NCBI GenBank assembly: GCA_035221665.1
Contig: CM069147.1
Location: 20,398,001 to 20,462,000 of the forward strand
Direction: 5' to 3'
Source of the DNA: Okamejei kenojei
Taxonomy: Eukaryota
Length of the DNA stretch: 64,000 bases
The translations under genes were made by a program, and so were the position numbers. Below are positions 18,469 through 52,016 of this stretch, piece after piece. Numbering within the stretch: the stretch's first letter is position 1; each line of letters begins with the position of its first letter. The notes below the pieces were generated by a model. That model was not told where the DNA came from and did no database searches. It saw only the letters and a list, made by a program, of their open reading frames with translations.

Positions 18469-18606
18469 TCAACTTCTCGCTTTCCTTGAAACCTTTACAC
18501 CCGCGTACACTGAGTGTTTGTCATTCTGCTTAGATAGCGATGTTTCCTTGGAGTTGGAAAGCTGCAGCGAGGCGTAAGTCAGCTTGTCATCTCCGCCTTG
18601 TTTGGT
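18469..18606 (-). CDS. Copy A last exon, ITIMs LTYASL and SVYAGV
   Basis: acag|TKQGGDDKLTYASLQLSNSKETSLSKQNDKHSVYAGVKVSRKARS*; candidate AATAAA at 18397-18392. Confidence 0.88.
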   Translation of the reverse strand, partial: TKQGGDDKLTYASLQLSNSKETSLSKQNDKHSVYAGVKVSRKARS

Positions 18607-21600
18607 CTGTGAAATAAATTCAATATTGCCCGTTAACCCATTGTACAGTGACTCAGGAAAGCAATCGCTGTTTCAATACGATTGGAATATAACCAACAAT
18701 AAATATTTCCAGATTGCAGATTACGTATCAGAGTTTATGTTCATATGATTTATCCAGTCTTCTGCGGAGCCTGTCTTGGTCTAGCGAACAGTAGTGAATA
18801 TTCAATTTTATTCTCTCCACATTGCCATCAACACTTCGCTCACTCCTAGTACTACTTGCCTAAACACGGGACATTTTAAATGTCTAGTTAGCCTACAACC
18901 CCTCACGTGATTCGGGATGTGCGAAGAATTCGGAGCACCTCGGGAAACCCGCGAGGATGTAACAAAAAACGTTCAAACTTCACACTGACAGCACATAAGG
19001 CCAGAATTTGTTTTACTTTGTGGTTGGATATACGAGGAGAAGCCATAATAACTATCTCACTGTGTGATCTTCGTTAGATAATGTGGAAAAACTGTCAAGA
19101 GTGCTTGTCATATGTCCCAGATAGAACTCTGAAATTCTTACTTGCACCAGCACAACAGAATAAGTAAACATAGTACTCTGTAAATAATATAACAAACCTC
19201 TCTGAGGTCCAGCGCCATCCGGCCACCTGTCCCCTATTAAGGTGGATTTCCTGAATTCAGATTTCAATCTGTTCCTCTTGTCATTGTCTGAATTTATCAT
19301 ATTTCGTGGCGCTGGATATGCCCGCTGGATGGAAAAGCCTGTTGGCTGTTCCTTACCTTTCTTAATTTCCCATTAATTTTGGACAGCATTCTACATTAAA
19401 CCCGGGAACAGCGATAAGGGTAATTTGCATTGGGATGGCGTCGTGCAGCCGAATGTGCTGTTCGGCTCTATCTGGTTTCAACGTCACAATTGGAAATCGC
19501 CAATACGGCTTTTCCACAGTCGTACAAGGTCAAAATTATGTTCACGTTACTTCATAATCAACAGAAATTATTTCCTTTAATCTGATATTTACTTGGAATT
19601 ATTTTCGTGCAAATACTTTGCCCTTACCTCGGCATAGACAACATGCTCTTCCTTTCGTCGATATTTGGTAATTTTTTTGCCCTCACTCAAATTTATTGTT
19701 GCGTAGGCAGAGGCATCTTCACTTGACGCTTGTCGAACCTATTAGAAAGTGATATTCAACAAAGGTTAGCGGAGTGTCCGATGTAGTTCTTTAAAGAGTG
19801 AGTCTGAAACATAAACATACAGAATGATTGCAAAAAAAGGGGCACGATATCATTTGAACTGCATTCAATTATATTTCTCAGAATGTCATTCCCGAGAGGA
19901 TTCAAAGTGCCAGTGTTCAACTTGTTTACTAATTTTGTAGCTTGCGATTCATTTGAATAATTTCTCCTCCAAATGCGATCCATTTCTCACTTCCCGCCAA
20001 ATTATTCAGTCTCTGTTGTCGCCGTTTCCCACATCCCTATATCCCAGGCAACCTGGCTTATTTGAGCACTTGGTAGTGGGACGAGTTTGTCGTCTGCCCT
20101 TATGCGCTTACATGTACTTTCATTCTTAGGTCGCAATTTATAGTAGCGAAGTAACCGAGCAATCCGCATCACTTTGGGGTACAAGGGGAGTGGAGTATCT
20201 GGCCGAAAAGCACGCAAGAATAAACTACAAATCACCCGCAGGTACCGTTGGAGATTGGAATTGAACCCGATCAGGACGGAACTATGAGACTGCAGGTTTG
20301 CTCGTTGCGCCCCTTCCAATTTTAGAGGCGACAGGCAAAATGGTTTCCTTCTGCGCTGCAATGTTCTAAAATTATATGGAATGAAACTGATATATTCTCT
20401 GCTGATCGTATAATTTCTGTACTCGTCCATCCCTCTTGGAAACAAGAACAATAGCTTCACCTACCGGTTGTACGCTATGACTTGCTTCCACGGAGTTTGC
20501 ATTAATTCCTACATGGAAAAAAAATAAATCTCGAATAACATTTTAATGTCAGGAAAATGTAAGTTACGCATTAGATTATAATCACATCTACTGCCTATGG
20601 ACCCTTGAAGGCAGGCGACAATCCCGTATACTATCGGTGTACCACCGCCACAATGTAATATGTTGTACATTCATATATACCATCCGCGTTAGATCTGCAC
20701 AACCGGAGGAAGCGAATGTCTAAACCAAATAACTCATGCTTCAAATTTTGACGTTAAAGCTAATCAACACGCTATTAATACAGTTGTTTGAAAAACACAC
20801 ACTCGATCGATGATTGAATAATTCGAAAGGGCAGGGGAAATAATTGTAGTTTAACTTACAACTAATAACTAGTATTGCTTTGGCTTCTTGTTTCAATGAT
20901 TCTCAGAATGCACCAACCGCTTTTCTATCAACGGTTGTATGAAATGAAAAATGATGCAAGGTTCTTACCTCGTTGTGCCTTTAATGCGAATCTTGTCAAA
21001 ATTATAAGCAGAACTACAAATGACAGTCCGCCCGCGACACATCCGAGAATTAGAGTTTTGTCCGTGGTTTCTGGATATGGCGAAAAATGAGAACAGTGAA
21101 ACATAAATACACACAGGGACCGGGAGACAAGAAGGCAGAGCAACCGTTCAATATTTTCTGTACAAATAATTTATGACTGCCCCATGGCACGCATTGTACG
21201 GTAATGGCGAATTTATAGAACAGATCACATTATACGGTGGCTCTTTGCAGAGGTTTGGTTATTAAGTTGAGATGACTGTTCAATTTCATGTTTACAAAAC
21301 TACGCCCGGTAGTTTGACAACAGTTTAAAAAGTCAGAATGCATTCTATATTCTGGACCTGACACCCTGGACCCGCCACCGCAGGTTCCAGTAAATATGAA
21401 AAAGAACTGGATTTTTGTGTTTGCACAACTATCTAATTGTATTAGAAAATAGACACAAAAGTGCTGGAGTAACTCAGCGGGACAGGCAACATTCCTGGAG
21501 AGAGGAATGGGAGTCGTTTCTGATCGAAACCCTTGTTCAGATTGTATTTCTCGGCAGGCTGGAGTCAGCGTTAAATGCCTCCCGGCTTACCTTGCTCGAC

Positions 21601-23697
21601 AATGTAGCTGAAACTGGCAGGGACTGTAAGAGTTACGTGTGATACCAGGCAGGTGTAAACAGTTTTGCCTGGAGCAGGCTGCGTATCGCGCAAAAAACTG
21701 GAAGCCTCGTAAAGTCCATCCGCTGTTCTGTTTCTCACGGTTTCAATGCCGGTCAAAATTTCCACGTAGTTTCTTTGCCAGATGACTTTTAATTCCTCCG
21801 GATAAAACGCAGCCGTTTTACACACGAGTTGCGGCAAATGCGGCGCGCTTCCTTCAATAGCGACAATTTTCAATGGAGTTGGGGGAGCTGGAACAAAAAA
21901 AAGCGTGAAACTGCAAAATATATTTTATTTCAATGAACATTTGTCGCTGCCTCATGTTATCCGTGTGGTTGTTTGTTGAGTTTATACTTTTGTTAAAAAT
22001 TATTTTATGGAGGTTATCATGGTAAGTAGTGCAATTGAAACAAAGCACGAACTGCTGCCTCGCGGGGTTCACGCGATTATTAAGAAATAATGTGACACGG
22101 GTATTGCTTGGTAAGATTCCGTGACAGTGCTTTATGTTGAATTCAAAATCACGCGTTTCTTCTGAACATTTGCTCTTTCTTATCTGCAGATGGTAGTTAC
22201 AGAAAATGGACTGCACTGAATGGCAGAAGTACATCGGCGACAACAGTTGATTTTCTCGAAAAGCACGCAAGGATGAACCGAGCAAACTCTGTTTCTCATT
22301 CCATATATGTTATTAACAAGACATTAACGAGCATGGTTCCATTTGTGCTGGAGCCACTGTCAGTAATATTTACCGAGCGGGAGAGTTAATTGTACTTTAT
22401 TTTGTCAATGCATTGCGTAATCTCCTTAATGTCGTTTGTGTTTAAGCATTTTTACTTTCCTTAATTGATGTAATAACATCTTAGTGTACTATTATTATTA
22501 TTAATTAATAAAGCGATATCACCTTTTACTCCCTGTGCCATATAAATGATTACCAAGCAAACCTCTATTCCATACGATGATATAACCGTGGATCTATTTT
22601 GAAATAAGAAGTAATATCGGAGAATTGCAGTTGTAGTTCCTTTTTTTCTTTTTTCATTCCACGAACTTTCCTGGAGACTGTGAAAGTGTAAACAAAATTA
22701 TCCACCTCAAAACTGTGAGATCCATTTCTCCTCCGCTTTTAGTTGATGGGAAAGTTTGTCGGGTGGAAAATTTTGGAACTTTCTGGAAATTCAGAGTAAC
22801 GTGAATTTGGATGGGCATTTGAAAAGCTGGAGGTCAAAATATAATTGGACCTGCCAATTTACAAGAGCCACAACCATGGTAATGTCACTATGCCTTTGTA
22901 AGATAACCCGGAGTAATAAAAAAACAAAACTATAACAGAACTCTCGCTGCACGTATATTGACCGACGGATAGAATATTTTTGTTTGTTCCCTTTATTTCA
23001 GATTTCCATCTCGGAAGTAACCATTAAAATTATAGAACTAGATAAGATTAATATTTCCTCCACCAGCAAGCTTTAGTTACATTTGCAACAGATGAACATA
23101 TCCCACTACCCGTAACAAAGAGACACTTACTAACACAATTAGCTGGGAGCCAGTTCCATTGCCGATAATGTGCAGTTGGTGTTTCACTCGACAGTAATAT
23201 ATCCCGACGTCTGCGACACTCACATTCAGCAAAGTAAATGTACTGCTTCCCTTGTCTACTTTGAATTGTTTTCTGTCGTCCGGTTCCATAAATGTCTTCT
23301 CGCCCTCTCTCCACCAAGAAACGTCAGCGGTTTCTTTTAATATTGGAAATTTGCAGAACATGGACACACGGCTGCCCCTTGAGACCCTCAGGAATGCGGG
23401 GAATTGTTCCACTTTGCTCGAAGTTGCTTTTGTCAGAGGCAGAAATAAGTAAATATGATGAAAACAGTTGCACATACAGCACCAAGAAAAAGAGCCAATG
23501 GATACACAAATACAAAACAATTAGGAAATAATGGTTAGCCAATTGCAGAAACGTTGTAAATGTAATTTGCTGTGGCATACTAGTGTAAAATATTGACAAA
23601 TATGATTTGCTTAGCGAAATCGGTTCAGAAACTAAGCATACCTTGACAAACCAAAGCAAGAAGACCCATTGTACCGAAACCATTGCTTTCACGGCAT
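18469..23697 (-). CDS. Receptor copy A: inhibitory-type VJ-C1-TM-ITIM IgSF receptor (SIRP/NKp30-like); frame-disrupting 1-nt indels in this assembly
   Basis: Exons: leader 23642-23669 (homologous start 23697), V 23131-23426, C1 21591-21887, TM 20969-21070, cyt1 20465-20508, cyt2 19628-19738, cyt3 18469-18606. All GT-AG; phases match except at the V donor (296 nt). Confidence 0.85.
19628..19738 (-). CDS. Copy A cytoplasmic exon 2 (SAYATI, VVYAE)
   Basis: tag|VRQASSEDASAYATINLSEGKKITKYRRKEEHVVYAE|gtaag, phase 0-0. Confidence 0.85.
20465..20508 (-). CDS. Copy A cytoplasmic exon 1
   Basis: Polypyrimidine tract, gtag|GINANSVEASHSVQP|gtaggt; phase 1-0 bridges the TM and cyt2 exons exactly. Confidence 0.8.
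20969..21070 (-). CDS. Copy A TM exon (uncharged)
   Basis: ETTDKTLILGCVAGGLSFVVLLIILTRFALKAQR|gtaag. Confidence 0.9.
21591..21887 (-). CDS. Copy A Ig C1-set exon
   Basis: LVCKTAAFYPEELKVIW...YTCLVSHVTL, C1 signature; phase 1-1. Confidence 0.93.
23131..23426 (-). CDS. Copy A Ig V-set exon with germline J-like motif
   Basis: MFCKF...VSWWR...DVGIYYCRV...GNGTGSQLIV. Confidence 0.92.
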
Positions 23698-24187
23698 ACT
23701 GCAAAAGAGAAGGGTTTGCATAAGAAATAGGTTTTCATAGAATGCCTGAAGCGTGTGACTCCGACGCCGTAAATCACATGACTAAGGCATCGTGATGCAT
23801 TTTGAGTATATTTTTTGTTTCAGCGAGTATGATCTAGGAAATATGTTTTCTTCGATTTCTTACGCCAAAATGATTTCTCTCCCAGCCATTGTTGGTGCAC
23901 CGCGTTTGGACAACACGTATTTAAATCCATTTACCTCAACCTCGTTCTCAAATTGAGACTTTGTCCTACGGGAGCATATAGATACAAGGGCAGTCAAATA
24001 TTCAGCCTCGTATATTTCGTGCTTACGATCACAGATTATCCCACCTTTAATGCAGAAGGGTGTGATGACCTTTGACTTAGTCACGCTGCGAATTTATTAC
24101 ATTGCAGCCAAAAACCCCAAGCCTCAATTGCAGCATTTAAATGAGATACATTATAGCCAAGTGATGTGTTGATAAGGATTTGATCAT

Positions 24188-24201
24188 CCACTAGATGGCA
24201 G
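24188..24201 (+). promoter_or_regulatory. CTCF-consensus site upstream of copy A
   Basis: CCACTAGATGGCAG, ~500 bp upstream of the leader exon; conserved in copy B. Confidence 0.5.
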
Positions 24202-25609
24202 TTCGACGGCGTACCACTGAGAGTTTTCGCTATTGATTCGGATCATCTAATTCCTCACGCAAGGAATTTAGAAAGGGAAACCCATAGTCAGTTTGATTGC
24301 ATTATTTTTCGCTTACAATATATTGTGCATCTGTTACCTTTATCCGTGGTACCATAAGTGACTATAAGCAAAAATGTTATAACCTCTTTCCATAGTTAAA
24401 ATTCAGGAATTAACTAGCCTCTTGCTCCCAAGTTTAATCTGTTACCTTCGCAGATATTTGCAACAGCAACTTTAGCGCAAAGGTATTCAAGGGCCAAATG
24501 TGCATTACAAAACCCGATACTGAAGAGAAGGGGACCCGATCGGCACAAGACTAAAGTTAATTCAACAAACAAAAGGACGATGCGAGTTTATTAAAGTAAA
24601 CGCTTGGATTGTTAGAAATAGAATCAATTATCCAAAAAAAAAAAACGGAACTACGTCCAAGACCACAAACGGTTTCAGAGACAAAAAATATTATTCTTTA
24701 CAGTATGAATGTTAACTTAAAATTGTTGCATTCTTGGAGATTTGAGCACTTGACAACTTGTGATGCCTAATTTAAAAAGACCAGCATGAGCAAGGTATAT
24801 AGTCCATGGACTTTGTTCCCGATCAATGCAAGTTGCGATGTAACTTTTTAAACGTTATAATTGTTCAAGCATCATCTTTGCAAATGTGGTTCCTTTTGGT
24901 TATTTCAGGTTCACATTTTCAACACACAAAGAATAGTTATTATGGTAGGATGAATAACAAAACGTGAATCAAAAAAGGTGACTTGTGTGAAGGAACATAA
25001 GATGCTCATATGTACAAACGTAAGAAGTTTAAGTAAGTGGGGGGGCGACGGGAGTAGAGGGGAGAAGGGGGAAGAAGAGGGGAAGGGGGAGAAGGGGGAG
25101 AAGAGGGAGAAGGGGAGAAGGGGAGAAGGGGGAGAAGGCGTGGAGACACTTTTAAGAAGCCAGACAACTTTTAATAAGCCAGAGATACACCTCCGTGAAA
25201 TTCGGCGGGCATTTAACATTACCGTTGGGTTATCCTTGGTTCTGAAAATTGGTGCTTACGTTTTTTTCCCCCCCAGTGAGCCAATGAAAATGACTGGTCA
25301 GCAAAGGCGATTAACTAAACCTACCTGCGACCACCTCGACTGCCTATAACTACATGGCAACCCAACTACAACTGCACCTAGGACTACAGGATTTTCGATT
25401 TTCTCCATGGCACGCAATTTTTGGTCGCAGAACATTTTTCACCATGTTGAAAATTTTGCGGCGACTATACTGAGGTCGCGACTAGTTCTCAGAATGCGGG
25501 AACTTTTCGCGACCATGAAGGAGACTTACCAGAGACCATCAGCGAATATGTGGCGACCATATGGTGAGCGCAGATTAGAGTCTCCTGCACACGCCTAAAA
25601 AGTCACCTA

Positions 25610-25676
25610 AAGGGACTGTCCCACTGCGGCGACCTAATCTCTCCCCCCCTCCACACTCTCTAAAAGACTTACTATA

Positions 25677-25742
<66 letters not shown>

Positions 25743-25870
25743 ACGGTCAGTCGATCCAGCTCACGGTTTCATTGCTGACGGTCAATCCAGCTTGAGGTTT
25801 TTCAGGAGAGTGCCCTTGAGCTTGAAAGGTCACGTTAGTGGGACAGGCCCTTAAGTGGGACAGACCCTTA
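25610..25870. mobile_element. PIF/Harbinger-like MITE containing a (GT)n microsatellite (25679-25740)
   Basis: Ends gggactgtcccact / agtgggacaggccc; a longer version is at ~54243-54933. Confidence 0.55.
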
Positions 25871-25979
25871 TTGGACTGGCAGTCTCTTATCATAACTGAA
25901 AAAATAATTCCATGAAAAAAATCTGATGTATATACGCTTCTCATTTTATTTCTAGCCAGAGAACAGAAAGGAGATGAGG

Positions 25980-26560
25980 AACCTTCAAGACAACAACTTT
26001 TCCCTCAATGTCAGCCAGACAAAGGAGAGACAAATGAGATTGTGATTGAATTCAGCAAGAGAAACAGTGCCCACCCCACTTATGCATTGATGGCGCTGAA
26101 GCAGAAATGGTCGAAAGGTTCAAGTTCCTTAGAATAAATATCACCAGCAATTTGTCCTGGACCAGCCACGTCGAAGCTATAGCGAGAAATGCACATGAAT
26201 GCCTCTACGAACTGAGAAGGATTATGAATTTCGGCATGACACCAATAACCTCACCAACTTCAACAGGGGCATTGTAAACAACTTTTTGAGGATGCATTAT
26301 AGACAGATTTGAAAACAGCTCCATCCAAGACCACAAGAAATTGCAGAGAGTTGTGGACGTAGCTCTGACCATCGCACAAACTAACTTCCCATCCATTGAC
26401 TCCATCTGCTGCGGCAAGGCCGTCAGGATAATCAAGGACCAGCCTTATATGGGCCATCACTCTTCTCCCCTCGCACATGAGGCATGACGTACAGACGTTT
26501 CCGAATGCATATCTCCAGAATCAGGGACAATTTCCACCCAGCTGTAATCAGGCAAGTGAA
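25980..26560 (+). mobile_element. Decayed Rex1/Babar-like LINE 3' region; empty site of the BEL insertion at 26199-26203
   Basis: Remnant reading QDNNFSLNVSQTK; colinear with both BEL flanks in copy B. Confidence 0.6.
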
Positions 26561-28606: not shown

Positions 28607-31290
28607 CAGTGGCTTGCAAAAGTTTTCATACCCCTTGAACTTTTCCACATTTTGTCACGTTACAACCACAAAATGTAAATGTATTTTATTGGGGTTTTAT
28701 GTGATAGACCAACACAAAGTGGCATATAATTGTGAAGTGGAAGGAAAATGATACATGGTTTTCAAGTATTTTTTACAAATAAAATACTGAAAAGTGAGGC
28801 GTGCAAAAGTATTCAGCCCCCTTTACTCTGATACCCATAAATAAAATCCAGTGCAACCAATTGGCTTCAGAAGTTACCTAATTAGTAAATAGAGTCCACT
28901 TGTGTGTAATCTAATCTCAGTATAAATACAGCTGTTCTGTGAAGGCCTCAGAGGTTTGTTAGAGAACATTAGTGAACAAACAGCATCATGAAGCCCAAGG
29001 AACACACCAGACAGGTCAGGGATAAAGTTGTGTAGAAGTTTAAAGCAGGGTTAGGTTATAAAAAATATCCCAAGCTATGAACATCTTATGGAGCACTGTT
29101 CAATCCATCATCCGAAAATGGAAAGAGTATGGCACAACTGCAAACCTACCAAGACATTCTTTGTAATTCTGTGATTTTTACATTGTAAAAAACCTTGATC
29201 CATCATTGAGGGTTTAAATGTAGGGTTGTTTACAAAATGGGAAGTAGTGGCAAATTATCCAATTTTAGTGTCTTTTCTAATTGTTTCCAAATGTGTATTC
29301 CACTATTATGGGGTTTTCACTATAGGTTTTTTTTTTTTTGCTTAATTTCGTAATAGCAAATAAGATCGAACCAATTTCAAAAGGTAAACAGTCTTCCTTT
29401 TCCATTTTTAACCCATCTGGTTGTTGGTGCAGTTCTACCAACCAAAAATTCATATTTTTAATGTTAACTGCCCAAAAATAGAGCATAAAATTCGGTAGGG
29501 CTAAACCTCCATTTATTTTTGATTTACATAATTGCTTTTTATTTATTCTGTGATTCTTATAATCCCAGATAAAATTAGTGACTATAGAGTCAACCTTTTT
29601 AAAAAAAGTTTTTGGGAGATATATCGGGATTGATTGAAAGAGGTACAATAATTGCGGGAGAAAAATCATTTTTATTGCATTAATTCTACCAAACATAAGA
29701 ATATTTTATATTGGAAAGAATTACCTATGTGTAATTTGTTCAATAAAGGCGGAAAGTTAAGTTTAAATAAAGAAGTACATGTCTTTGTTACATAAATTCC
29801 AAGATATTTAAATTTTTCATTTACTATTTTGAATGGAAATTGTTGTAATATATGTTGATTACTTTCCATTATTGGCATGATTTCACTTTTATTCCAATTA
29901 ATTCTGTATCCTGAAAACGAGCCATATTGAGTTAAATTTAATAAGTTTGGGATACTAACTTCAGGTTTTGTAATGTAGATGAATACATCGTCTGCATATG
30001 AAGACATTTTATTCTCAGTATCTTTAGTATTATACCCATATATTTCAGGATGGGACCTCACGATTTCTGCTAGTGGCTCTATTGCGAGTGTGAATAATAG
30101 CGGAGTTAACAGACATCCTTGTCTACAGCCTCAAGATAAATTAAATTTAGCTGATAACATTTAATTTGTCAATATTCTAGCTGTTGGATTAGTATATAAA
30201 AGTTTTAGCCATGTACTAAACTTCTTGCCCAATTGAAAATTTTTCATAACCAAAAATAAATAGGGCGATTCCACCTGGTCGAATGCTTTCTCATCATCTA
30301 ACAAAATAATTGCTAGATCTTCATTAGTACTTCTCTTTGAATATATAATATTGAATAATCGTCTCAGGTTATATGAAGAGAGGCTTTATCATAAGAGCCT
30401 CTATGGAAGAGTGGCAAGAAGAAAGCCATTGTTGAAACAAAGCCATAAGAAGTCCCGTTTGCAGTTTGCCACAAGCCATGTGGGGGGCACAGCAAACATA
30501 TGGAGGAAGGTGCTCTGGTCTGATAAGACCAAAATTGAAGTTTTTGGCCTAAATGCAAAACTCTATGTGTGGCGGAAAACTAACACTGCACATCACCCTG
30601 AACACACCATCCCCACTGTGAAACATGGTGGTGGCAGCATCATGCTGTGGGGATGCTTTTCTTCAGCAGGGACAGGGAAGCTGGTCAGAGTTGATGGGAA
30701 GATGGATGCAGCCAAATACAGGACAATCTTGGAAGAAAACCTATTACAGTCTGCAAAAGACTTGAGACTGGGGCGTAGGTTCACGACCCTAAACATACAG
30801 TCAGAGCTACAATGGAATAGTTTAGATCAAAGCATATTCATGTGTTAGAATGGCCCAGTCAAAGTCCAGACCTAAATCCAATTGAGAATCTCTGGCAAGA
30901 CTTGAAAATTGCTGTTCACAGATGCTCTCCATCCAATCTGACTGAGCTTGAGCTATTTTGAAAAGAAGAATGGGCAAAAATTTCAGTCTCGAGATGTGCA
31001 AAGCTGGTAGAGACATACGCCAAAAGACTTGCAGCTGTAATTGCAACGAAAGGTGGTTCTACAAAGTATTGACTCAGGGGGGCAGAATACTTTTGCATGC
31101 CACACTTTTCAGTTTTTTAGTTGTAATAAAATTTGGAAACCATGTATCATTTTCCTTCCACTTCACAATTATGCACCACTTTGTGTTGGTCTATTACATA
31201 AAATCCCAATAAAATACATTTACGTGTGTGGTTGTAACGTGACAAAATGTGGAAAAGTTCAAGGGGTATGGAAACTTTTGCAAGCCACTG
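28607..31290 (+). mobile_element. Tc1 transposon with long (~200 bp) TIRs and TA TSD, nested in the DIRS RT
   Basis: ta|cagtggcttgcaaaag ... cttttgcaagccactg|ta; transposase [28 protein letters not shown]; excision restores RRYLKFSW. Confidence 0.95.
29157..30397 (-). mobile_element. L1/Tx1-clade ORF2 internal fragment inside the Tc1
   Basis: SYADD, FSGYRINWNKSE, GRINAIKMIFLPQLLYLFQSIP, GGLALPNF. Confidence 0.85.
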
Positions 31291-37000: not shown

Positions 37001-37990
37001 TGGGAGGGGAGGAGGGGATTTGCGGAGGTGGGGTGGGAGGGGAGGAGGGGAGGGCGTGTGTGTGCGTGCAGGGAGATGTACGGTGGGAGAGGGAGGTGTG
37101 GTGGAAAGGGGGATGTGGGGTAGGGGGGTGTGTGGCGGTGGTGTATGGGGTGGGAGAGGAGTGTGTATCTGGGTGGGAGGGGAGTGGGAGGGGGAGGAGG
37201 TTGTGGGGTGGGTGTTGTGGGGGGAGGGCGGTGTCAGGGGTGGGTGTGGGCAGGTTGTGGGTGGAGGGGGTTGTGTGGTTGGGGTGGGTTGTGGGGGGAG
37301 TGGTTGTGTGGGCGGGGGGGGGGGGGGGGGGGGGTTGAGGGGGGGGGGAGATCTTGGAGAAAAGTCGAGGAAGACCATAGGGGAGACGGGGCATCACGGG
37401 GGAGGGGGGCAGCAGCCAGCGAGGGGGACCAGAGTGGAAGAAGCTGGAGCTGGCGATGCGATGGGGACTCACAGCGGGCCCTGGTTGCTGGTCGTTCTCC
37501 TCTGCCGGGATCAGAGTCTCCGTTTTCCATTTGGAGACATCGACCAGATCTCCATCTCCGCACCGGGCTGGGCCACTTCTGGTCCCTGCGAAAATTGTGT
37601 CTGGTTCAAGACCTCCAACGGCCATCCAGAGCGTCCTTCAGATCCAGTAAAGGAGCAGGAAGGTGCGGACTGTCCCATGGAGTGACAGGAGAAGAGACAA
37701 ATCTGTGCGGCGTTGACTGGCAGGAGAGGAGATGCATCTGCGCACGCACGGTTTTAAGATTTTGAAACCTCGCTAACTTTTACATTATGGCACCGATCGG
37801 AACCTAACTTGGTGCACTCGCAGTACAAGAGAACGGGGAATGAGCTGGCGAAAAATCGTAGCGCTATCCGTACCGTTTTTGCACAAATAGAAAAACCGCG
37901 CAAACCAGAAGATAACAAGTTCGGAGTTTTAGAGATAGATAGATGGATGGATAGATGGATGGATGGATGGATGGAAAGAAAGAAAGATAA
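34023..37990 (-). mobile_element. Non-autonomous Helitron-like element(s) with low-complexity interior, interrupted by CR1
   Basis: Subterminal hairpin GGGAC..GTCCC (34034-34050) near a decayed CTAG end; (TCTA/TCCA)n at the other end. Confidence 0.45.
34961..36892 (-). mobile_element. 5'-truncated CR1 LINE
   Basis: SGVSQGSVLGP, FADDTK; (TTTCTATG)n tail. Confidence 0.93.
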
Positions 37991-40242: not shown

Positions 40243-40657
40243 TGCCCCTGTCCCACTTAGGAAACCTGAACGGAAACCTCTGGTGACCTTGCGCCCCACC
40301 CAAGGTGTCCATGAGTCGCCAGAGGTGTTGGTCACTTGCCTGGAAAGCCACCACTGAAGCGCGAGCTGCATCTACTGACCAAAGATCCCACAGGATCTTT
40401 GCTACTGACCACACACACACACACACACACCGTGAAGGTGGGGGCCAAGGACAGCGGAGGAATGCTGTATGTGTGGTGAAGAGGAAGGTAAACGGCTGCC
40501 ACAAAGCACGGAACATAGAAGAAGCCTCAACTACGCGGAAACCACTTTTTACCGTTAGGGAGAGTGAACAAAACCTCCGGGAACCTCACGGAAACCTTGG
40601 GTGAGGCGCAAGGTCTCCAGAGATTTCCGTTCAGGTTTCCTAAGTGGGACAGGGGCA
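40243..40657. mobile_element. PIF/Harbinger-like MITE
   Basis: Long near-perfect TIRs tgcccctgtcccacttaggaaacctgaacggaaa...; TAA TSD. Confidence 0.85.
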
Positions 40658-41424
40658 TAACTCAGGATCGAACCCGGTCACTGGCGCAGTGAGGTATCTG
40701 CAACTCTACCAGCTGCGCTACTGTTGCTGTAGGTTGCTATCTGTAGGTCGTGGAATATGAAATATGGAGGTTCCAGTACTAATGTTGTTGCTTATCCACT
40801 TTACATTTTTTTTGTCTTAATTGATTACATTTAACAATGCAAAATGTCACGGAACGATTTGTTACTTTTCTCGGTGTAAACACATTTCCAATTGTTTGAT
40901 TTTAGTCGAAGCAACTTCTAGCGACGAGTTAGAATTTGGAGTACAGTCATCATAAAGATAGTGGTAATTAGAGGAGACTTTCTCTCCTGGCTTGCTCAAC
41001 TACAAACAAATATAGTTAACGTTTCATGCGACAATGTTCAAGTTGTATACGACTCTATGACCTTGAAGAAAATTAAGTTCTTGATTCCATTACCATTATA
41101 CATCAGTATGTTATTTATTTTTTGTCGTTCCCGTTTATTATACCAATGTATCGATTCAAATAAATGATAAAGAGTCACACAGAAATGCTTCAGTTACGGG
41201 ATTTCTGTACTGTATGGTATTTTGCTCTCTGCAAGTATTTGTTAGCAAGCAAAGGTGCAGTAATATTGAGGTGAGGCTGAAAAGGAGAAGTAGTAAAAAG
41301 CACAGTGGAAATTATCACTTGCATTTTGCACGGATCTACTGCATTGGTGTGCTGCAGTGACTTTGCTAAGCAATGATAAGACAAACAGCTATCTTTTTTT
41401 CATGGGTAAGCCAATCAATGATCA

Positions 41425-42639
41425 GGAAAAGCTGCAGGGAGGTATGTCATCTTGTCATCTCCGCCTCGTTTGGTCTGTGAAAGAAATGCAATATTGCCTG
41501 TTAGTACATTGTCCAGTGATCAAGGAAAGCAATCAATTTTTCAACACAATTGGAATGTAGTCAACAATTATAATTTCCAAATTGCAGATAACGTGTAAGA
41601 GTTTATGTTCATATTATTTATCCAGTCTTCTGCGGATCCTTTCATGGTCCAACACAACAAATTCGTGGTAACACAAATATCCATTAAAAATATTCCCATT
41701 TTATTCTCTCTGCATTGCCATCAACACTTCGCTCACTCCTAGATTATACCACTTGCCTAAACATGGGGCATTTTAAATCTCTAATTAGCCTACCACCCCT
41801 CACGTGATTCGGGATGTGCAAAGTATTCGGAGCACCTCAGGAAACCTGCGAGGACGCACCAAATAACGTTCAACCTTCACACTGACAGCACCGAAAGCCA
41901 GGATTTGTTTTACCTTGTGTATAGACAAGGAGAAGCCATAATATCTCTGTCACTGTGTGATCTTCGTAGATAAAATGGAAACACTGTCAAGAGTCAAGAG
42001 TGCTTCTCATATGTCCCAGATAGAACTAAGATATTCTTAGCTGCAGCAGCACAACAGAATAAGTAAACATAGTACTCTTTAAATAATATAGTAAACCTCT
42101 CTGAGGTCCTGTGCCATCCTGTCACCTGTCCCCTTTGAGGTGGATTTCCTAAATGCAGATTTCACTCTGTTCCTCCTGTCATTGTCTGAATTTCTCATAT
42201 TTCCTGGCACTGAATATGACCGCTGGGTGTAAAAACCTGTTGCCGGTTACCTTGTCTGTTTCTTAATTTTGCATTTATATTGGACAGCATTCTACGTTAA
42301 AATCCGAGAACAAAGATAAAGGTAAATTTGCAGTGGGATGTATCGTGCAGCTGAATTTGTTGTCTGCTCTATCTGGTTTCATGCCACAATTCAAAATTCG
42401 TCATTACGCGCTTTTCCGTAGTCGTACAAGATCAAAATTTTGTTCACGTAACTTCATAATCAACAAAAATAAATCCCTTTAACCTGATGTTTACTTGGAA
42501 TGCATTTCGTGCAAACACTCTGCCTTTACCTCGACATGAACAACATGCTCTTCGTTGCATCGATATTTGGTTTTTTTTTTCCTCTCACTCAAGTTTAGTG
42601 TTGCTAGGCAGAGGCAGCTTCACTTGACGTTTCCCGAAC
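41425..42639 (-). pseudogene. Orphaned, decayed ITIM exons of copy B (42530-42639 and ~41425-41474)
   Basis: Homologous to A cyt2/cyt3; TAC->TAG by 1-nt deletion, Tyr->His, 2-nt deletion after the LTY-equivalent, last exon truncated. Confidence 0.88.
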
Positions 42640-42643
42640 ATAT

Positions 42644-45600
42644 TGTAGTGGCCATTTGGGCTTGTTTTGTGTGTCATTAATGATGGCATGTGTCTTTAAA
42701 TTTTAGACTGCCAGTTATATTGTGGATGGGATTTATGACGTATTTTAGGGCGTGTTTGGAGCTGGGTTTCTTGCGCAGAAGCTTAGTTTTTAGTTTAGTT
42801 TTGGACCAGCATGGGGGAGGAGGCATATGCTTTGACCATGTGAAGTGTAACGGAGACACGAGGTGTTTTCTAACCTTTAAAGCAATATGCTGGAGTTCGA
42901 TGAAGATTATAGTGTGTGAGACGGAAGAAGCTGGGATGTACCTTATTGTTTTTAATCAACAATAAATATTCTATTGATCAAAAGACTGTGTTGTGAAGAT
43001 GTATCTGTGAAGAAGCTCTGAAGGTCTCTGACGGAGAGCGCGCATGAGTATAACATTCTCCTTAATTATAGAAACATAGAAACATAGAAATTAGGTGCAG
43101 GAGCAGGCCATTCGGCCCTTCGAGCCTGCACCGCCATTCAATATGATCATGGCTATTCATCCACCTCAGTATCCTGTACCTGCCTTCTCTCCATACCCCC
43201 TGATCCCTTCAGCCACAAGGGCCACATCCAACTCCCTCTTAAATATGGCCAACGAACTGGCCTCAACTACCTTCTGTGGCAGAGAATTCCACAGATTCAC
43301 GACTCTCTCTGTGAAAAACGATTTTCTCATCTCGGTCCTAAAAGACTTCCCCATTATCCTTAAACTGTGACCCCTTGTCCTGGACTTCCCCAACATCGGG
43401 AACAATCTTCCTGCATCTAGCCTGTCCAACCCCTTAAGAATTTTGTAAGTCTCTATGAGATCACCCCTCAATCAGCGAGTACAAGCCAAGTCTATCCATA
43501 TGTTCTTCATATGGAAGTCGAGCCATCCCAGAAATCAGTCTGGTGAACCTTCTCTGTACTCCCTCTATGGCAAGAATGTCTTTCCTCAGGTTAGGAGACC
43601 AAAACTGTACGCAATACTCCAGGTGTGGCCTCACCAAGACCCTGTACAACTGCAGTAGAACCTCCCTGGTCTTGTACTCAAATCCTTTTGTGATGAATGC
43701 CAACATACCATTTGCTTTCTTCACAGCCTGCTGCACCTGCATGCCTACTTTCAATGACTGGTGTACCATGACACCCAGGTCTCGCTGTATCTCCCCTTTT
43801 CCTAATCGGTCACCATTCAAATAATAGTCTACCTTCCTATTTTTGCCACCAAAGTGGATAACCTCACATTTATCCACATTATACTGCATCTGCCATGCAT
43901 TTGCCCACTCACCCAGTCTATCCAAGTCATCCTGCAGCCTCCTAGCATCCTCCTCACAGCTAACACTGCCCCCAGCTTCGTGTCATCCGCAAACTTCGAG
44001 ATGTTGCATTTAATTCCCTCGTCCAAATCATGAATGTATATTGTAAATAGCTGGGGTCCCAGCACTGAGCCTTGCGGCACCCCACTAGTCACTGTCTGCC
44101 ATCCTGAAAAGGACCTGTTCACTCCTACTCTTTGCTTCCTGTCTGCCAGCCAGTTCTCTATCCACATCAATACTGAACCACCAATACCGTGTGCTTTAAG
44201 TTTGTTTACCAACCTCTTGTGTGGGTCCTTGTCGAAAGCCTTCTGAAAGTCCAGATACAACACATCCACTGCTTCTCCCTTATCCACTCTACTAGTTACA
44301 TCCTCAAAAAATTCAATAAGATCCGTCACACATGATTTACCCTTGGTAAATCCATGCTGACTTTGTCCAATGATTTCACCACTTTCCAAATGCGCTGCTA
44401 TCCCATCTTTAATAATTGACTCTAGCAGTTTCCCCACTACCGATGTTAGACTAACTGGTCTGTAATTCCCCGTTTTCTCTCTCCCTCCCTTTCTAAAAAG
44501 TGGGGTTACATTATCTACCCTCCAATCCTCAGGAACTATTCCAGAATCTAAAGAGTTTTGAAAAATTATCACTAAGGCATCTGCTATTTCTGGGGCTACT
44601 TCCTTAAGTACCCTGGGATGCAGCCTATCTGGCCCTGGGGATTTATCAGCCTTTAATCCATTCAATTTACATAACACCACTTTCTGGCTAACCTGGATTT
44701 CACTCATTTCCTCCATCTCATTTGACCCGCGATCCCCTGCTATTTCCGCCAAATTATTTATGTCTTCCTTAGTGAAGACAGAACCAAAGTAGTTATTCAA
44801 TTGGCATGCCATGTCCTTGTTCCCCATGATCAATTCACCCGTTTCTGACTGCAAGGGACCTACATTTGTTTTAACTAATCTTTTGCGCTTTACATATCGA
44901 TAAAAACCTTTGCAGTCAGTTTTTATGTTTCCTGCCAGTTTTCTTTCATACTCCATTTTCCCTTTCCTAATTAAGCCCTTTGTCCTCCTCTGTTGGTCTC
45001 TGAATTTCTCCCAGTCCTCTTGTAGGCTGCTTTTTCTGGCTAGTTTGTACGCTTCATCTTTTTCTTTGATACTATCCCTGATTTCCTCGTTATCCACGGA
45101 TGCGCCACCTTCCCTGATTTATTCTTTTGCCATACTGGGATGAACAATTGTTGTAGTTCATCCATGCAGTCTTTAAATTCCTTCCATTGCATATCCACCG
45201 TCAACCCTTCAAGAATCAATTGCAGTCGATCTTGGCCAATTCACTTCACATACCCTCAAAGTTACCTTTCTTTAAATTCAGGACCCGTGTTTCTGAATTA
45301 GCAATGTCACTCTCCATCCTAATGAAGAACTCAACCATATTATGGTCACTCTTGCCCAAGGGGCCACGTACAACAAGGCTGCTAACTAACCCTTCCTCAT
45401 TACTCAATATCCAGTCTAGAATAGCCTGCTCTCTCGTTGGTTTCTCCACATGCTGGTTTAGAAAAACTATCCCACATACATTCCAAGAAATACTCTTCCT
45501 CAGCACCCCTGCCAATTTGATTCACCCAATCTATATGTAGATTGAAGTCACCCATTATAACGGTTTTACCTTTGTTGCACGCATTTCTAATTTCCTGTTT

Positions 45601-47345
45601 GATGCCATCCCCAACTCCACTACTACTATTAGGAGGCCTGTACACAACTCCCACTAGCGTTTTCTGCCCCTTGGTGTTTCGCAGCTCCACCCATATCGAT
45701 TCCACATCCTCCAAGCTAATGTAATTCCTTTATATTGCATTAATCTCCGCTCTAACCAGCAACGCTACCCCACCTCCTTTTCCTCTCTGTCTATCCTTCC
45801 TGAATATTGAATATCCCTGGATGTTCAGCTCCCAGCCTTGGTCCCTCTGGAGCCATGTCTCCGTGATCCCAACTATATCATAATTATTAATAGCTATCTG
45901 CACATTCAACTCATCCACCTTATTACGAATGCTCCTTGCATTGAGACACAAAGCCTTCAGGCTTGTTTTTACAACACTCTTGGCCCTTTTACAATGATGT
46001 TGAAAAGTGGCTCTTTTAGATTTTTGCCCTGGATTTGTTTTCCTGCCACTTTTCACCTTGCTACCTATTGCTCCTATCCTCATTTTACACCCCTCTGTCT
46101 CTCTGCTCACACATTAAGAAACCCTCCACTTCTTATTCTCCGTTTGTTATTTATTTCTTCTTTCCTCCCTACGTGTTGCATCTGGCTGCTTCTCTTCTCT
46201 GCCTCCTGCCTCACAAACAGACTACTTGCCTTCTCTATTTGAGTCCCTCCCCCCAACCGATCTAGTTTAAAGTCTTCCCAGTAGCCTTTGCAAATCTCCC
46301 CGCCAGGATATTGGTTCCCCTCGGGTTCAAGTGCAACCCATCCTTTTTGTACAGGTCGCACCTTCCCCAAAAGAGGTCCCAATGATCAGGAAACTTGAAT
46401 CTCTGCGCTCTGCACCAGTCCTTTAGCCATGCATTGATCCTCCACCTTGCTCCATTCCTACTCTCACTGTCGCGTGGTACAGGCAGTAATCCCGAGATTG
46501 TAACCTTTGCGGTCCTTCTCCTTAACACTCTTCCTAACTCCCTAAATTCTCCTTTCAGGACCTCCTCTCTTTTTCTACCTATGTCATTGGTACCTATATG
46601 TACCACGACCTCTGGCTCTTCTCCCTCCCATTTCAAGATATCTTGGACACGTTCAGTCACATCCCGGATCCTGCCACCAGGGAGGCAAACTACCATCTGG
46701 GTCTCCTGACTGCGTCCACAGAATCGCCTATCTGACCCCCTAACTATAGAGTCCCCTATTACTGCTGACCTCCTCTTCTTTTCCTTACCCTTCTGAGCAA
46801 CAGGGCCGGTCATTGTACCGGAGGCCCGGTTGCTGTTGCTACCCCCAGGTAGGCTGTGCCCCCCAACAGTACTCAAACAGGAGTACTTATTGCCAAGGTG
46901 TACAGCCATCGGGGTACTCTCTAGTCCCTGCCTCTGCCCCATGCCTCTCCTAACCGTGACCCACTTTTCTGCCTCCTGTGGTTTTGGAGTGACCACCTGT
47001 CTGTAGCTCCTCTCTCTGACTTCTTCACTCTCCCTGACCAGACGGAGGTCATCGAGATGCTGCTCCAGGTACCGAATACGGTCCATTTGGAGCGCCATCT
47101 TGACGCACCTGGCGCAGATGTGGACGTCTGGAGAGCTATCTGACTGCATGACCTCCCACATCTGACATCCAGAACAGTAGACTGCCCTGGCACTCATCCT
47201 CCCCCTTACCCTGGATACAATACAATATACAATACAATACAAAGCAAGGATTTTAGCTGATTATGTAGATTATGTAAGGATTATGTAGTCCATTTAGCGG
47301 CTAGAGGGAGTAATCTCTTGAACGATATAAAAACCTGCCGCTACA
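42644..47345 (+). mobile_element. Solo LTR (~0.5 kb excluding the nested CR1) inserted in the copy B splice acceptor
   Basis: TGTAGTGG...CCGCTACA termini, AATAAA at 42961, TSD catat (42639-42643) / cctat (47346-47350) matching the single cctat in A (19738-19742). Confidence 0.8.
43068..47245 (-). mobile_element. Near full-length CR1 LINE nested in the solo LTR (open ORF1 with SGNH esterase; ORF2 frameshifted)
   Basis: ORF1 46262-47242 GDSIVR/HIGTND/DGLHL; APE motifs NARS, ETW, GDFN, SDH; RT FADD; (TTTCTATG)n tail. Confidence 0.95.
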
Positions 47346-50300
47346 CCTATTAGAAAGTGATACTCAACACAGTTAGCAGAGGGTCTGATGTAGTTCTTTA
47401 AAGAGTGAGTCTGAAACATAAACATACAGAATGATTGCAAAAAAGGGGCACGATACCATTTGAACTGCATTCAATTACATTTCTCAAAATGTCATTCCCG
47501 AGAGGATTCAAAGTGCCAGTGTTCAACTTGTTTATTAATATTGTAGCTTGCGATTAATTTGAAAAATCTCTCTTCCAAATGCGATCCATTTCTCACTTCC
47601 CGCCACCTTATTCCGTCTCCGTTATCGCCGTTTCCGGCTTCCCCATAGATTTCATCAGCGATAGCAGGGCCCTCTGTATATCCCCGGCAACCTGGCTAAT
47701 TTGAGGACTTGCTAGTGGGACGAGTTTGTCGTCTGCCCTTATGCACTTACATGTACTTTCATTCTTAGGTCGCAATTTATTGTAGCGAAGTAACCGAGCA
47801 ATCCGCATCACTTTGGGGTACAAGGGGAGTAGAGCATCCGGCGGACAAGCACACAAGAATAAGCTGCAAATCACACATTCTTGGAGATTAGGATTGAACC
47901 CGATCAGGACGGAACTGTGAGTGCACCCCTTCCAATTTTAGAGGCGACAGGCAAAATGGTTTCCTTCTGCGCTGCAATGTTCTAAAATTATATGGAATTA
48001 AACTGATATATTCTCTGCTGATCGTATAATTTCTGTACTCGTCCATCCCTCTTGCAAACAAGAACAATAGCTTCACCTACCGGTTGTACGCTATGACACG
48101 CTTCCACGGAGTTTGCATTAATTCCTACATGGAAAAAAAAGAAATCTCGAATAACATTTTAATGTCAGGAAAATGTAAGTTACGCATTAGATTATAATCA
48201 CATCTACTGCCTATGGACCCTTGAAGGCAGGCGACAATCCCGTATACTATCGGATTACCACCGCCACAATGTAATGTGTTGTTCATTATACCTTCATATA
48301 TACAATCCACGTTAGATCTGCACAACCGGAGGAAGCGAGGGTCTAAACCAAATAACTCATGCTTCAAATTTTGACGTTAAAGCTAATCAACACGCTATTA
48401 ATATAGATGTTTGAAAAACACACACTCGATGGATGATTGAATAATTCGAAAGGGCAGGGGAAATAATTGTAGTTTAACTTACAACTAATAACTAGTATTG
48501 CTTTGGCTTCTTGTTTCAATGATTCTCAGAATGCACCAACCGCTTTTCTATCAACGGTTGTATGAAATAGAAAATGATGCAAGGTTCTTACCTCGTTGTG
48601 CCTTTAATGCGAATCTTGTCAAAATTATAAGCAGAACTACAAATGATAGTCCGCCCACGACCCATCGGATAATTAGAGTTTTGTCCGTGGTTTCTGGATA
48701 TGGCGAAAAATGAGAACAGTGAAACATACATACACACACAGGGACCGGGAGATAAGAAGGCAGAGCAACCGTTCAATATTTTCTGTACAAATAATTTATG
48801 ACTGCCCCATGGCACGCATTGTACGGTAATGGCGAATTTATAGAACAGATCACATTATACGGTGGCTCTTTGCAGAGGTTTGGTTATTAAGTTGAGATGA
48901 CTGTTCAATTTCATGTTTACAAAACTACGCCCGGTAGTTTGACAACAGTTTAAAAAGTCAGAATGCATTCTATATTCTGGATCTGCCACCGCAGGTTCCA
49001 GTAAATATGAAAAGGAACTGGATTTTTGTGTTTGCACAACTATCGAATTGTATTAGAAAATAGACACAAAAGTGCTGGAGTAATTCAGCGGGACATGCAA
49101 CAACTCTAGAGAGAGGAATGGGAGACGTTTCTGATCGAGACCCTTGTTCAGATTGTATTTCTCGGCAGGCTGGAATCTGCGTTAAATGCCTCCCGGCTTA
49201 CCTTGCTCGACAATGTAGCTGAAACTGGCAGGGACTGTAAGAGTTACGTGTGATACCAGGCAGGTGTAAACAGTTTTGCCTGGAGCAGGCTGCGTATCGC
49301 GCAAAAAACTGGAAGCCTCGTAAAGTCCATCCGCTGTTCTGTTTCTCACGGTTTCAATGCCGGTCAAAATTTCCACGTAGTTTCTTTGCCAGATGACTTT
49401 TAATTCCTCCGGATAAAACGCAGCCGTTTTACACACGAGTTGCGGCACACTTCCTTCAATAGCGACAATTGTCAATGGAGTTGGGGGAGCTGGAACAAAA
49501 AAAAGCGTGAAAAAATATATTTTATTTCAATGAACATAATTGTCGCTGCCTCATGTTATCCATGTGGTTGTTTATTGAGTTTATACTTTTGTTAAAAATT
49601 ATTTTATGGATGTTATCATGGTAAGTAGTGCAATTGAAACAAAGCACGAACTGCTGCCTCGCGGGGTTCGCGCGATTATTAAGAAATAATGTGACACGGG
49701 TATTGCTTGGTAAGATTCCGTGACAGTACTTTGGTGAATTCAAAATCACGCGTTTCTTCTGAACATTTGCTCTTTCTTATCTGCAGATGGTAGTTACAGA
49801 AAATGGACTGCACTGAATGGCAGAAGTACATCGGCGATTTTCTCGAAAAGCACGCAAGGATGAACCGAGCAAACTCTGTTTCTCATTCCATATATGTTAT
49901 TAACAAGACATTAACGAGCATGGTTCCATTTGTGCTGGAGCCACTGTCAGTAATATTTAGCGAGCGGGAGAGTTAATTGTACTTTATTTTGTCAATGCAT
50001 TGCGTAATCTCATTAATGTCGTTTGTGTTTAAGCATTTTTACTTTCCTTAATTGATGTAATAACATCTTAGTGTACTATTATTATTAATTAATAAAGCGA
50101 TATCACCCTTTACTCCCTGTGCCATATAAATGATTACCAAGCAAACCTTTATTCCATACGATGATATAACCGTGGATCTATTTTAAATAAGAAGTAATAT
50201 CGGAGAATTGCAGTTGTAGTTCCTTTTTTTCTTTTTTCATTCCACGAACTTTCCTGGAGACTGTGAAAGTGTAAACAAAATTATCCACCTCAAAACTGTG

Positions 50301-51279
50301 AGATCCATTTCTCCTCCGCTTTTAGTTGATGGGAAAGTTTGTCGGGTGGAAAATTTTGGAACTTTCTGGAAATTCAGAGTAACGTGAATTTGGATGGGCA
50401 TTTGAAAAGCTGGAGGTCAAAATATAATTGGACCTGCCAATTTACAAGAGCCACAACCATGGTAATGTCACTATGCCTTTGTAAGATAACCCGGAGTAAT
50501 AAAAAAACAAAACTATAACAGAACTCTCGCTGCACGTATATTGACCGACGGATAGAATATTTTTCAGTTTGTTCCCTTTATTTCAGATTTCCATCTCGGA
50601 AGTAACCATTAAAATTATAGAACTAGATAAGATTAATATTTCCTCCACCAGCAAGCTTTAGTTACATTGCAACAGATGAACATATCCCACTACCCGTAAC
50701 AAAGAGACTTACTTAACACAATTAGCTGGGAGCCAGTTCCATTACCGATAATGTGCAGTTGGTGTTTCACTCGACAGTAATATATCCCGGCGTCTGCGAC
50801 ACTCACATTCAGCAAAGTAAATGTACTGCTTCCCTTGTCTACTTTGAATTGTTTTCTGTCGTCCGGTTCCATAAATGTCTTCTCGCCCTCTCTCCACCAA
50901 GAAACGTCAGCGGTTTCTTTTAATATTGGAAATTTGCAGAACATGGACACATGGCTGCCCCTTGAGGCCCTCAGGAATGCGGGGAATTGTTCCACTTTGC
51001 TCGAAGTTGCTTTTGTCAGAGGCAGAAATAAGTAAATATGATGAAAACAGTTGCACATACAGCACCAAGAAAAAGAGCCAATGGATACACAAATACAAAA
51101 CAATTAGGAAATAATGGTTAGCCAATTGCAGAAACGTTGTAAATGTAATTTGCTGTGGCATACTAGTGTAAAATATTGACAAATATGATTTGCTTAGCGA
51201 AATCGGTTCAGAAACGAAGCATACCTTGACAAACCAAAGCAAGAAGACCCATGTACCGAACCATTGCTTTCACCGGCAT
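47341..51279 (-). CDS. Receptor copy B: activating-type VJ-C1-TM(Arg) IgSF receptor with short Tyr-free tail, ~263 aa
   Basis: Exons 51225-51279, 50713-51009, 49202-49489, 48592-48693, 48081-48124, 47341-47346 (GTG TAG); total 792 nt, all phases consistent. Confidence 0.87.
48081..48124 (-). CDS. Copy B cytoplasmic exon 1
   Basis: GINANSVEACHSVQP, phase 1-0. Confidence 0.8.
48592..48693 (-). CDS. Copy B TM exon with Arg
   Basis: ETTDKTLIIRWVVGGLSFVVLLIILTRFALKAQR; CGA at 48667-48665. Confidence 0.9.
49202..49489 (-). CDS. Copy B Ig C1-set exon
   Basis: Same C1 motifs as A; 9 nt shorter, in frame. Confidence 0.93.
50713..51009 (-). CDS. Copy B Ig V-set exon with J-like motif
   Basis: 297 nt, phase 1-1; DAGIYYCRVKHQLHIIGNGTGSQLIVL. 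Confidence 0.93.
51225..51279 (-). CDS. Copy B leader exon
   Basis: MPVKAMVRYMGLLALVCQ|gtatgc, phase 1; the start Met is uncertain. Confidence 0.7.
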
Positions 51280-51967: not shown

Positions 51968-52016
51968 ATGAGGGAATTGAATGCAACATCTCCAGGTTTG
52001 CGGATGACACGAAGCT

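Follow-up and report, generated by a model that had tools for sequence, protein, structure and literature searches.

Do cartilaginous fish carry paired immune receptors, in which an inhibitory and an activating member share one ectodomain, and by what steps would the activating member have arisen? Paired receptors have been investigated extensively in mammals, birds and bony fish. To our knowledge, they have barely been described in the oldest jawed vertebrates. We addressed this question in a 64,000-nucleotide (nt) stretch of the Okamejei kenojei genome (CM069147.1, 20,398,001-20,462,000; hereafter the window, in whose positions all coordinates are given). Its minus strand carries two tandem receptor genes, A (23669-18469) and B (51279-47341), each with a variable domain ending in a J-like strand (V(J)), a C1-set immunoglobulin (Ig) domain and a transmembrane (TM) segment. 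A ends in a tail with immunoreceptor tyrosine-based motifs of the inhibitory kind (ITIMs), and B has lost this tail and has an arginine in its TM segment. The reading that we favour, with modest confidence, is that B works as a partner of A that does not inhibit and probably activates.

Self-comparison of the window showed that A (18558-24382) is copied as B in two match blocks, A 19737-24382 against B 47345-51968 (95% identity including indels) and A 18558-19743 against B 41428-42644 (82.7% identity), which in B are split by 4.7 kb of extra DNA. Exon chains were derived by aligning the two copies base by base and by searching for strings; the V and C1 exons were searched as separate queries, the TM and tail exons were compared by script, and translations were made exon by exon. 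AG/GT borders were found at every exon of A and B, with the phase-1 pattern typical of Ig-domain genes. The exons of A, all on the minus strand like those of B, are the leader (23669-23642, in a region spanning 23642-23697, with a phase-1 donor after 23642), the V(J) exon (23426-23131, or to 23127 with a weak donor), the C1-set exon (21887-21591), the TM exon (21070-20969) with the uncharged motif LILGCVAGG, and cytoplasmic exons 1 (20508-20465), 2 (19738-19628) and 3 (18606-18469). Cytoplasmic exon 2 encodes the ITIM SAYATI and VVYAE|T, and cytoplasmic exon 3 encodes the ITIMs LTYASL and SVYAGV followed by the stop, with an AATAAA 71 nt downstream. In B, the leader (51279-51225) begins MPVKAMVRYMGLLALVCQ, with the start kept as MPVKAMVRY…, and is followed by the V(J) exon (51009-50713; phase-1 donor A|GTAAGT), the C1-set exon (49489-49202), the TM exon (48693-48592) with LIIRWVVGG and its Arg codon CGA at 48667-48665, and cytoplasmic exon 1 (48124-48081), which retains its donor. 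The predicted end of the B reading frame lies at 47348-47341, where the retained acceptor AG of the old ITIM exon is followed by GTG TAG (47346-47341).

The preliminary description of this DNA had proposed tandem genes with near-identical V and C1 domains, an uncharged TM segment and four tyrosine motifs in A, and an Arg near the outer TM end with a tyrosine-free tail of about 24 residues in B. These points were borne out: 3 of 98 V residues differ in the single-exon translations, the C1 domains differ by K/T, A/V and one indel of three residues (present in A), all four motifs of A were at the positions claimed, and the B tail, which counts 25 residues, has no Tyr. The locus thus presents the features by which paired receptors are recognised, namely neighbouring genes with near-identical ectodomains, three canonical ITIMs in A and a short-tailed B with a TM Arg. 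The earlier proposal of a paired system therefore stands in its structural part, the shared ectodomain with an ITIM tail in one partner and a charged TM segment with a short tail in the other; its signalling part, through SHP phosphatases for A and an ITAM adaptor (immunoreceptor tyrosine-based activation motif) for B, we infer from these features.

The same description had labelled the ectodomain VJ-C1, and this label is fair. The V exon ends in NGTGSQLIVL, a J-like G strand with the bulge motif G-x-G-(T/S)-x-L-x-V within the same exon. An AlphaFold2 model of the B V exon reached a pLDDT (predicted local distance difference test) score of 94.9, and its nearest folds were CD79b, V-lambda, the V-alpha domain of the T-cell receptor (TCR), the IgNAR V domain and NKp30. 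This is a short domain, in which 53 residues separate the cysteines, and no C'' strand was assigned, as in IgNAR V. Matches of the C1 exon in the PDB included Ig constant domains, UrIg2, the beta-2 domain of major histocompatibility complex (MHC) class II, the class I alpha-3 domain and the IgC domain of CD276, and Pfam PF07654 is recorded for the homologues. For a family profile over V and C1, the best PDB matches were antibody chains, UrIg2 (9dmx) and SIRP-alpha (2wng).

The loss of the inhibitory tail in B can be read from the DNA itself. A 4.7-kb non-LTR (long terminal repeat) retrotransposon (42640-47344, minus strand, in the same orientation as B) lies 2 nt inside the first ITIM exon. 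Its open reading frames (ORFs) comprise an esterase-type ORF1, an endonuclease and a reverse transcriptase (RT), with frameshifts present, and the RT ORF matches LINE-1 ORF2p and R2 proteins; judged by these ORFs, the insert is a nearly full-length long interspersed nuclear element (LINE). The same ORFs and the RT match ruled out a solo LTR as the insert. B retains an undamaged acceptor at the first ITIM exon (…ctttctaatag|GT), and the foreign DNA starts after those two exon bases, so that the spliced B frame reads GTG TAG, that is, Val-stop. Behind the insert, the remnant of cytoplasmic exon 2 (42639-42530, minus strand) has no acceptor and a 1-nt deletion turns its first ITIM Tyr codon into TAG, and in the remnant of cytoplasmic exon 3 (41474-41415, minus strand) a 2-nt deletion wrecks LTYASL and homology to A stops soon after. 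If the latter remnant were spliced to cytoplasmic exon 1 of B, it would add one Tyr outside any ITIM. The LINE, the immediate stop, the decayed remnants and the lack of an ITIM even by this route make it certain that inhibitory signalling by B has been lost at the DNA level. Two sister copies of the LINE were present in the window, at 34958-36892 (minus strand) and 52078-52987 (plus strand), both about 90% identical to the insert in B; this divergence of about 10% indicates that the insertion in B is old. The copy at 52078-52987 is itself an insertion in the 5' flank of B relative to A.

The TM Arg of B is at position 4 of the segment, within the outer third of the stretch that crosses the membrane. 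Together with the adjacent Trp it replaces G-C, the two most conserved TM residues of the family, and G-C is kept both in homologues from about 15 species and in an orphan third TM exon of the window (9-107, minus strand; uncharged, ILGCIVGG). The presence of G-C in this outgroup exon and in the homologues indicates that the Arg and Trp of B are derived. That an Arg near the outer, N-terminal end of the TM segment couples to FcR-gamma or zeta, as the preliminary description had held, is established: CD89 binds the FcR-gamma dimer, NKp30 and NKp46 bind zeta/gamma dimers, and TCR-alpha binds the zeta dimer (PMC13107469). Moving the Arg of CD89 by one residue abolished assembly (PMC13107469), and the position of such an Arg therefore matters. 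By analogy with these receptors, B probably couples through its Arg to the Asp pair of an ITAM dimer, either zeta-zeta or of the FcR-gamma type.

An inhibitory partner with an intact reading frame is the other half of the proposed pair. In the assembly, the A leader exon has three 1-nt indels relative to B, and its first ATG (23697) meets TGA after two codons; the third ATG (23669) is usable and gives a 10-residue leader. A pair of indels at the V donor leaves the strong donor (TTA|GTAAGT, after 23131) in phase 0, which would frameshift C1 and bring a stop 5 codons into it; with a weak donor located 4 nt downstream (GTAA|GTGTCT, after 23127), the frame is kept. The open A frame of 339 codons thus requires both the third ATG and the weak V donor. 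DNA contigs of sequencing runs X1 and X5, which come from different samples, were aligned to A and scored against the list of A/B differences. They showed the A state at 20 lineage-specific differences, including indels of 9, 5, 10 and 3 nt, and the B-type, intact state at all nine 1-2-nt indels, those of the leader and V donor included. Both also carried a variant at 22246 that is absent from A and B. These results indicate either that there are A-lineage copies whose leader is intact and whose donor is in frame, or that the assembly has small-indel errors. It is unlikely that the contigs are A/B mosaics made by bubble popping in the contig builder, because both samples share one pattern and the private variant at 22246. 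The ITIM exons of A were gap-free in X1 and X5, and in the second sample two amino-acid changes were found, both outside the motifs. Ratios of read depth between the V-C1 region and the unique tail hint at more copies; depth is not copy number, and we draw no conclusion from them. One X5 contig, which lies at 20796-21360 over the A TM exon, has 15 gap-free differences from A and is not B-type, a hint of another allele or paralogue whose TM sequence differs.

Both genes belong to a larger group. A HMMER scan with the B V exon retrieved giant multi-Ig proteins and single-V proteins of 250-400 residues, with up to 63% identity, and all 61 of the 61 matches with a named source were from cartilaginous fish. 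The genera were Narcine, Mobula, Hypanus, Hemitrygon, Pristis, Amblyraja, Heterodontus, Heptranchias, Scyliorhinus, Chiloscyllium, Hemiscyllium, Carcharodon, Mustelus and Callorhinchus. Batoids supply the closest relatives, the B V exon being 62-63% identical to Narcine, Mobula and Hypanus models, and several family genes lie on one chromosome per species. In the alignment of the homologues, most of which are V-C1, the leader, V, PPTPL-C1, TM and tail are all conserved. The family profile matched the V and C1 exons of the window with E = 1e-44 to 1e-45, and the V-C1 region of A and B contains the family signature (WW-x-GE, YYC, GNG(T/S)GS-L-V, PPTPL, CKTAAFYPE and VYTCLVSH). On this profile and signature evidence, A and B are members of a chondrichthyan multigene family of non-rearranging V(J)-C1-TM receptors that extends from chimaeras to rays. 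Automatic RefSeq names for its members are inconsistent, among them PTPNS1-like (SIRP-alpha-like), SIRP-beta1-like, NCR3LG1-like, tapasin-related-like, TCR-beta-like and Ig-lambda-like.

The family tail consensus (xAYATLNL, VYAQTKQ, LTYAALQL, VYAEV) is matched motif for motif by A (SAYATINL, VVYAETKQ, LTYASLQL, SVYAGVKV). A would accordingly represent the family's standard inhibitory form, whose tail, once phosphorylated, should recruit SHP-1/2. Two TM types were distinguished in the family: type I, LI-x-GC-x-GG, is uncharged and goes with 3-4 tail tyrosines, as in A; type II carries an Arg close to its outer end and D/E-H at its inner end, goes with a short tail, and was found in Scyliorhinus, Chiloscyllium, Carcharodon and Heptranchias. 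By TM and tail layout, the closest parallel to B is the catshark (Scyliorhinus canicula) XP_ model P0171, in which a type I TM segment carries an Arg (LIIGRVGG) and the 26-residue tail ends after the equivalent of cytoplasmic exon 1. The ectodomain of P0171 is 91.4% identical to that of P0173, a catshark member with a type II TM segment, so that two different Arg-bearing TM modules are joined to closely similar ectodomains. A paired layout is thus a feature of the family, and the route of B was apparently followed more than once. Short tails also occur with an uncharged TM segment, in P0176 (Pristis) and P0178/P0179 (Mobula), and in P0198 (Hypanus sabinus) a type I TM segment bears an Asp (LIIAYTVDGLS).

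Substitution divergence between A and B falls steeply from 3' to 5': it is 12.8% in the old tail region, 6.5% at 20000-20499, about 3% around the TM exon and 0.4-1.6% in C1, V, leader and 5' flank. This gradient points to an old duplication whose 5' part afterwards underwent gene conversion repeatedly. In the course of events that we propose, B would have begun as an A-type inhibitory gene of an old tandem family. The LINE would have jumped into the first ITIM exon of B, 2 nt inside it, and closed the frame with Val-stop, and the ITIM exons behind it would then have decayed. The change of G-C to R-W in the TM segment would have supplied the outer-third Arg, and gene conversion would have held the promoter, leader, V and C1 of B at 98.4-99.6% identity to A while the old tail diverged. 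Pairing of the Arg-bearing B with an ITAM dimer would have made it an activating partner for the ligand of A. Given the near-identical ectodomains, the ligand of A is most likely bound by B as well, with no inhibitory signal, and both receptors would be expressed and assembled at the cell surface.

Several findings weigh against this reading. The stop of B lies in a LINE-derived terminal exon, with the first AATAAA 1.2 kb off, and in the assembly the lesions sit in A, not in B. No RNA run carrying A or B was found, the only RNA-labelled runs of the species, X21 and X22, covering just two high-copy repeats of the window and being probably DNA, and no Okamejei kenojei protein was found in the databases. 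The Arg of B is one residue off the catshark Arg and thus at a different helical position. The A/B coding differences comprise 10 nonsynonymous and 3 synonymous changes, and coding divergence (1.7%) is near that of non-coding DNA (2.5%), so that no purifying selection is detectable since the last homogenisation; the exons of B could have been kept open passively by conversion from A. Within 24 nt of the B TM exon lie 5 substitutions, of which 4 change the residue and are nonsynonymous (L>I, G>R, C>W, A/V), and this cluster is suggestive only: the Poisson probability for that 24-nt interval at the tract mean rate is P = 3e-4, and a cluster of at least 5 substitutions anywhere in the tract has P = 0.14 under a uniform model. 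Sharks yielded no FcR-gamma in a 2014 survey (PMC4016189). Zeta would therefore be the safer adaptor candidate. A zeta chain is expected wherever T-cell receptors exist.

The substitution counts would suit a B that is dead or dying, in which the LINE killed the gene, R-W is decay, and the leader, V and C1 stay open only through conversion from A or paralogues. The steep identity gradient as a mark of active conversion, the long time without a tail implied by the divergence of the LINE, the lack of RNA support in the runs of the species and the ER (endoplasmic reticulum) retention that is usual for an unpaired TM Arg (PMC13107469) all fit such a gene. We regard it as unlikely, though deserving serious weight, in view of the state of B itself: B is open throughout, its leader fits the conserved family leader, and it is the intact copy in the assembly, where A is lesioned. 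Its TM exon lies in the zone of weaker conversion, with 3% divergence, and yet the TM exon, the splice sites and cytoplasmic exon 1 are intact. The layout of B is moreover shared by the catshark RefSeq model, and short-tailed members with a TM Arg are common in the family. This recurrence of an outer-TM Arg across species in short-tailed members also counts against the idea that B is a tail-less decoy or modulator, which would bind the ligand of A without signalling and whose Arg would be incidental or serve dimerisation or retention. Such a role would agree with the uncharged short-tailed members in Pristis and Mobula, and with the fact that the ITIM loss is certain and adaptor coupling is an extrapolation from other receptors; against it, a buried Arg is costly unless paired, and 4 of the 5 clustered TM changes are nonsynonymous and strike the most conserved TM motif. 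We consider a decoy improbable. Least probable is that there is no working pair because A is a pseudogene, with only B or other paralogues functioning. The first ATG of A, which soon meets TGA, and the strong V donor, which leads to a stop in C1, would suit it; the X1 and X5 contigs, A-type at the 20 lineage-specific differences and intact at the nine small indels, speak against it, as do the ITIM exons, which are open in both runs and fit the family consensus. The partnership of A with a working, probably activating B therefore remains the reading that we prefer.

Paired receptors, with activating forms born from inhibitory ones, are a known kind of system, and SIRP is among the closest examples. 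Like A and B, it begins with an N-terminal V domain whose G strand is J-like and continues into a C1-set domain; it likewise comprises an inhibitory member with four tail tyrosines and an activating one whose TM segment holds a basic residue and whose tail is short. Among mammalian proteins other than antibodies, SIRP-alpha (2wng) matched the family profile best (E = 1.4e-26, 96 bits over V and C1). The order and spacing of the tail motifs in A presumably resemble those of the SIRP-alpha tail, which we take as a lead only. In contrast to SIRP with its two C1 domains (V-C1-C1), A and B have one C1 exon between V and TM; the activating SIRP has a Lys of the DAP12 type, whereas the Arg of B is high in the TM segment; and the family V domain is short, with no non-chondrichthyan protein among its close matches. 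UrIg2 and antibody chains outscored SIRP-alpha in the profile search, which ranks scores and is not a tree. Teleost NITRs form a multigene family with J-motif V domains, ITIM-bearing inhibitory members and short-tailed activating members with a charged TM segment; unlike A and B, they consist of V or V plus an I-type domain, lack C1 and are confined to bony fish. Members of the PRARP family, in chicken and other bony vertebrates, are said to have been described by Fu et al. in 2019, a paper cited in PMC10751288, as having a non-rearranging VJ exon, C1, TM and an ITIM tail. We know of PRARP reports from bony fish to birds, and of none in cartilaginous fish or of PRARPs as charged-TM partners. 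NKp30 (NCR3, 3noi) resembles B in its VJ-type V domain, a structural neighbour of the B V model, and in an upper-TM Arg that couples to zeta/gamma, but it is a single-domain, MHC-linked receptor with no C1 and no inhibitory twin. Activating KIR, Ly49, Siglec-14 and similar receptors arose from inhibitory genes along the route proposed for B, with a truncated tail, a newly acquired basic TM residue and gene conversion that holds the ligand-binding domains alike. These receptors, however, have C2 or lectin folds and belong to another lineage, and the truncation of B was brought about by a LINE at a splice acceptor. The elasmobranch UrIg and UrIg2 share with A and B a non-rearranging VJ plus C1, and 9dmx ranked second among the PDB matches of the family profile. 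UrIg2 possesses nine C1 domains and dimerises in an Fc-like manner, and no ITIM or charged-TM pairing has been described for it (PMC12227049). Membership of A and B in UrIg was rejected on the many C1 domains and the absence of ITIMs in UrIg.

No published description of the family, and nothing specific on adaptors in sharks, was found in the literature searched, a search that left the PRARP and UrIg source papers outside. The chondrichthyan V-C1 family described here has a paired design, gene models of the relatives being public under automatic names only. The A/B pair preserves the steps from an inhibitory to a putatively activating receptor: a retrotransposon at the acceptor, ITIM decay, gain of an Arg and conversion of the ectodomain. 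Since V(J)-C1 is the layout of antigen-receptor chains, the family bears on the form and signalling of their non-rearranging precursors. It may even be the chondrichthyan form of an ancestral non-rearranging VJ-C1 lineage (of SIRP, PRARP or antigen-receptor-precursor grade) that used ITIM tails together with TCR-alpha-like docking of an upper-TM Arg on the Asp pair of a zeta/gamma-type dimer, a broader proposal that we hold to be doubtful; if it were true, the A/B pair would record the de novo origin of that docking site in what had been an inhibitory gene. A and B also provide concrete constructs for tests of adaptor use in sharks and rays.

A scan of the window with the family profile yielded no third complete gene copy, and this candidate was rejected because nothing was found beyond the orphan TM exon described above. 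Between that exon and A there is no V or C1 exon. Near it lie a stop-ridden piece resembling cytoplasmic exon 3 (3091-3186, minus strand) and a short V-like fragment (NVSIFCKY; about 3649-3681, minus strand), and the orphan exon and these fragments are probably relics of further family members.

Other features of the window are mainly repeats. A short interspersed repeat is present inside the C1-TM intron (21443-21503) and a tail intron (19116-19294) of A, and again at 17145-17203, 10186-10241 and 2352-2405; depth over it was enormous in all four runs, the RNA-labelled ones included. Runs of N occur at 7727-7864 and 53660-53789, and Tc1/mariner transposase-like ORF fragments at 30351-30848 (plus strand) and 5133-5474 (minus strand). 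GC-rich, strongly skewed low-complexity blocks at 6649-7995, 14959-15600, 34145-34937 and 36864-37765 yield long ORFs rich in Pro/Ser/Leu or Gly/Arg/Glu on both strands.

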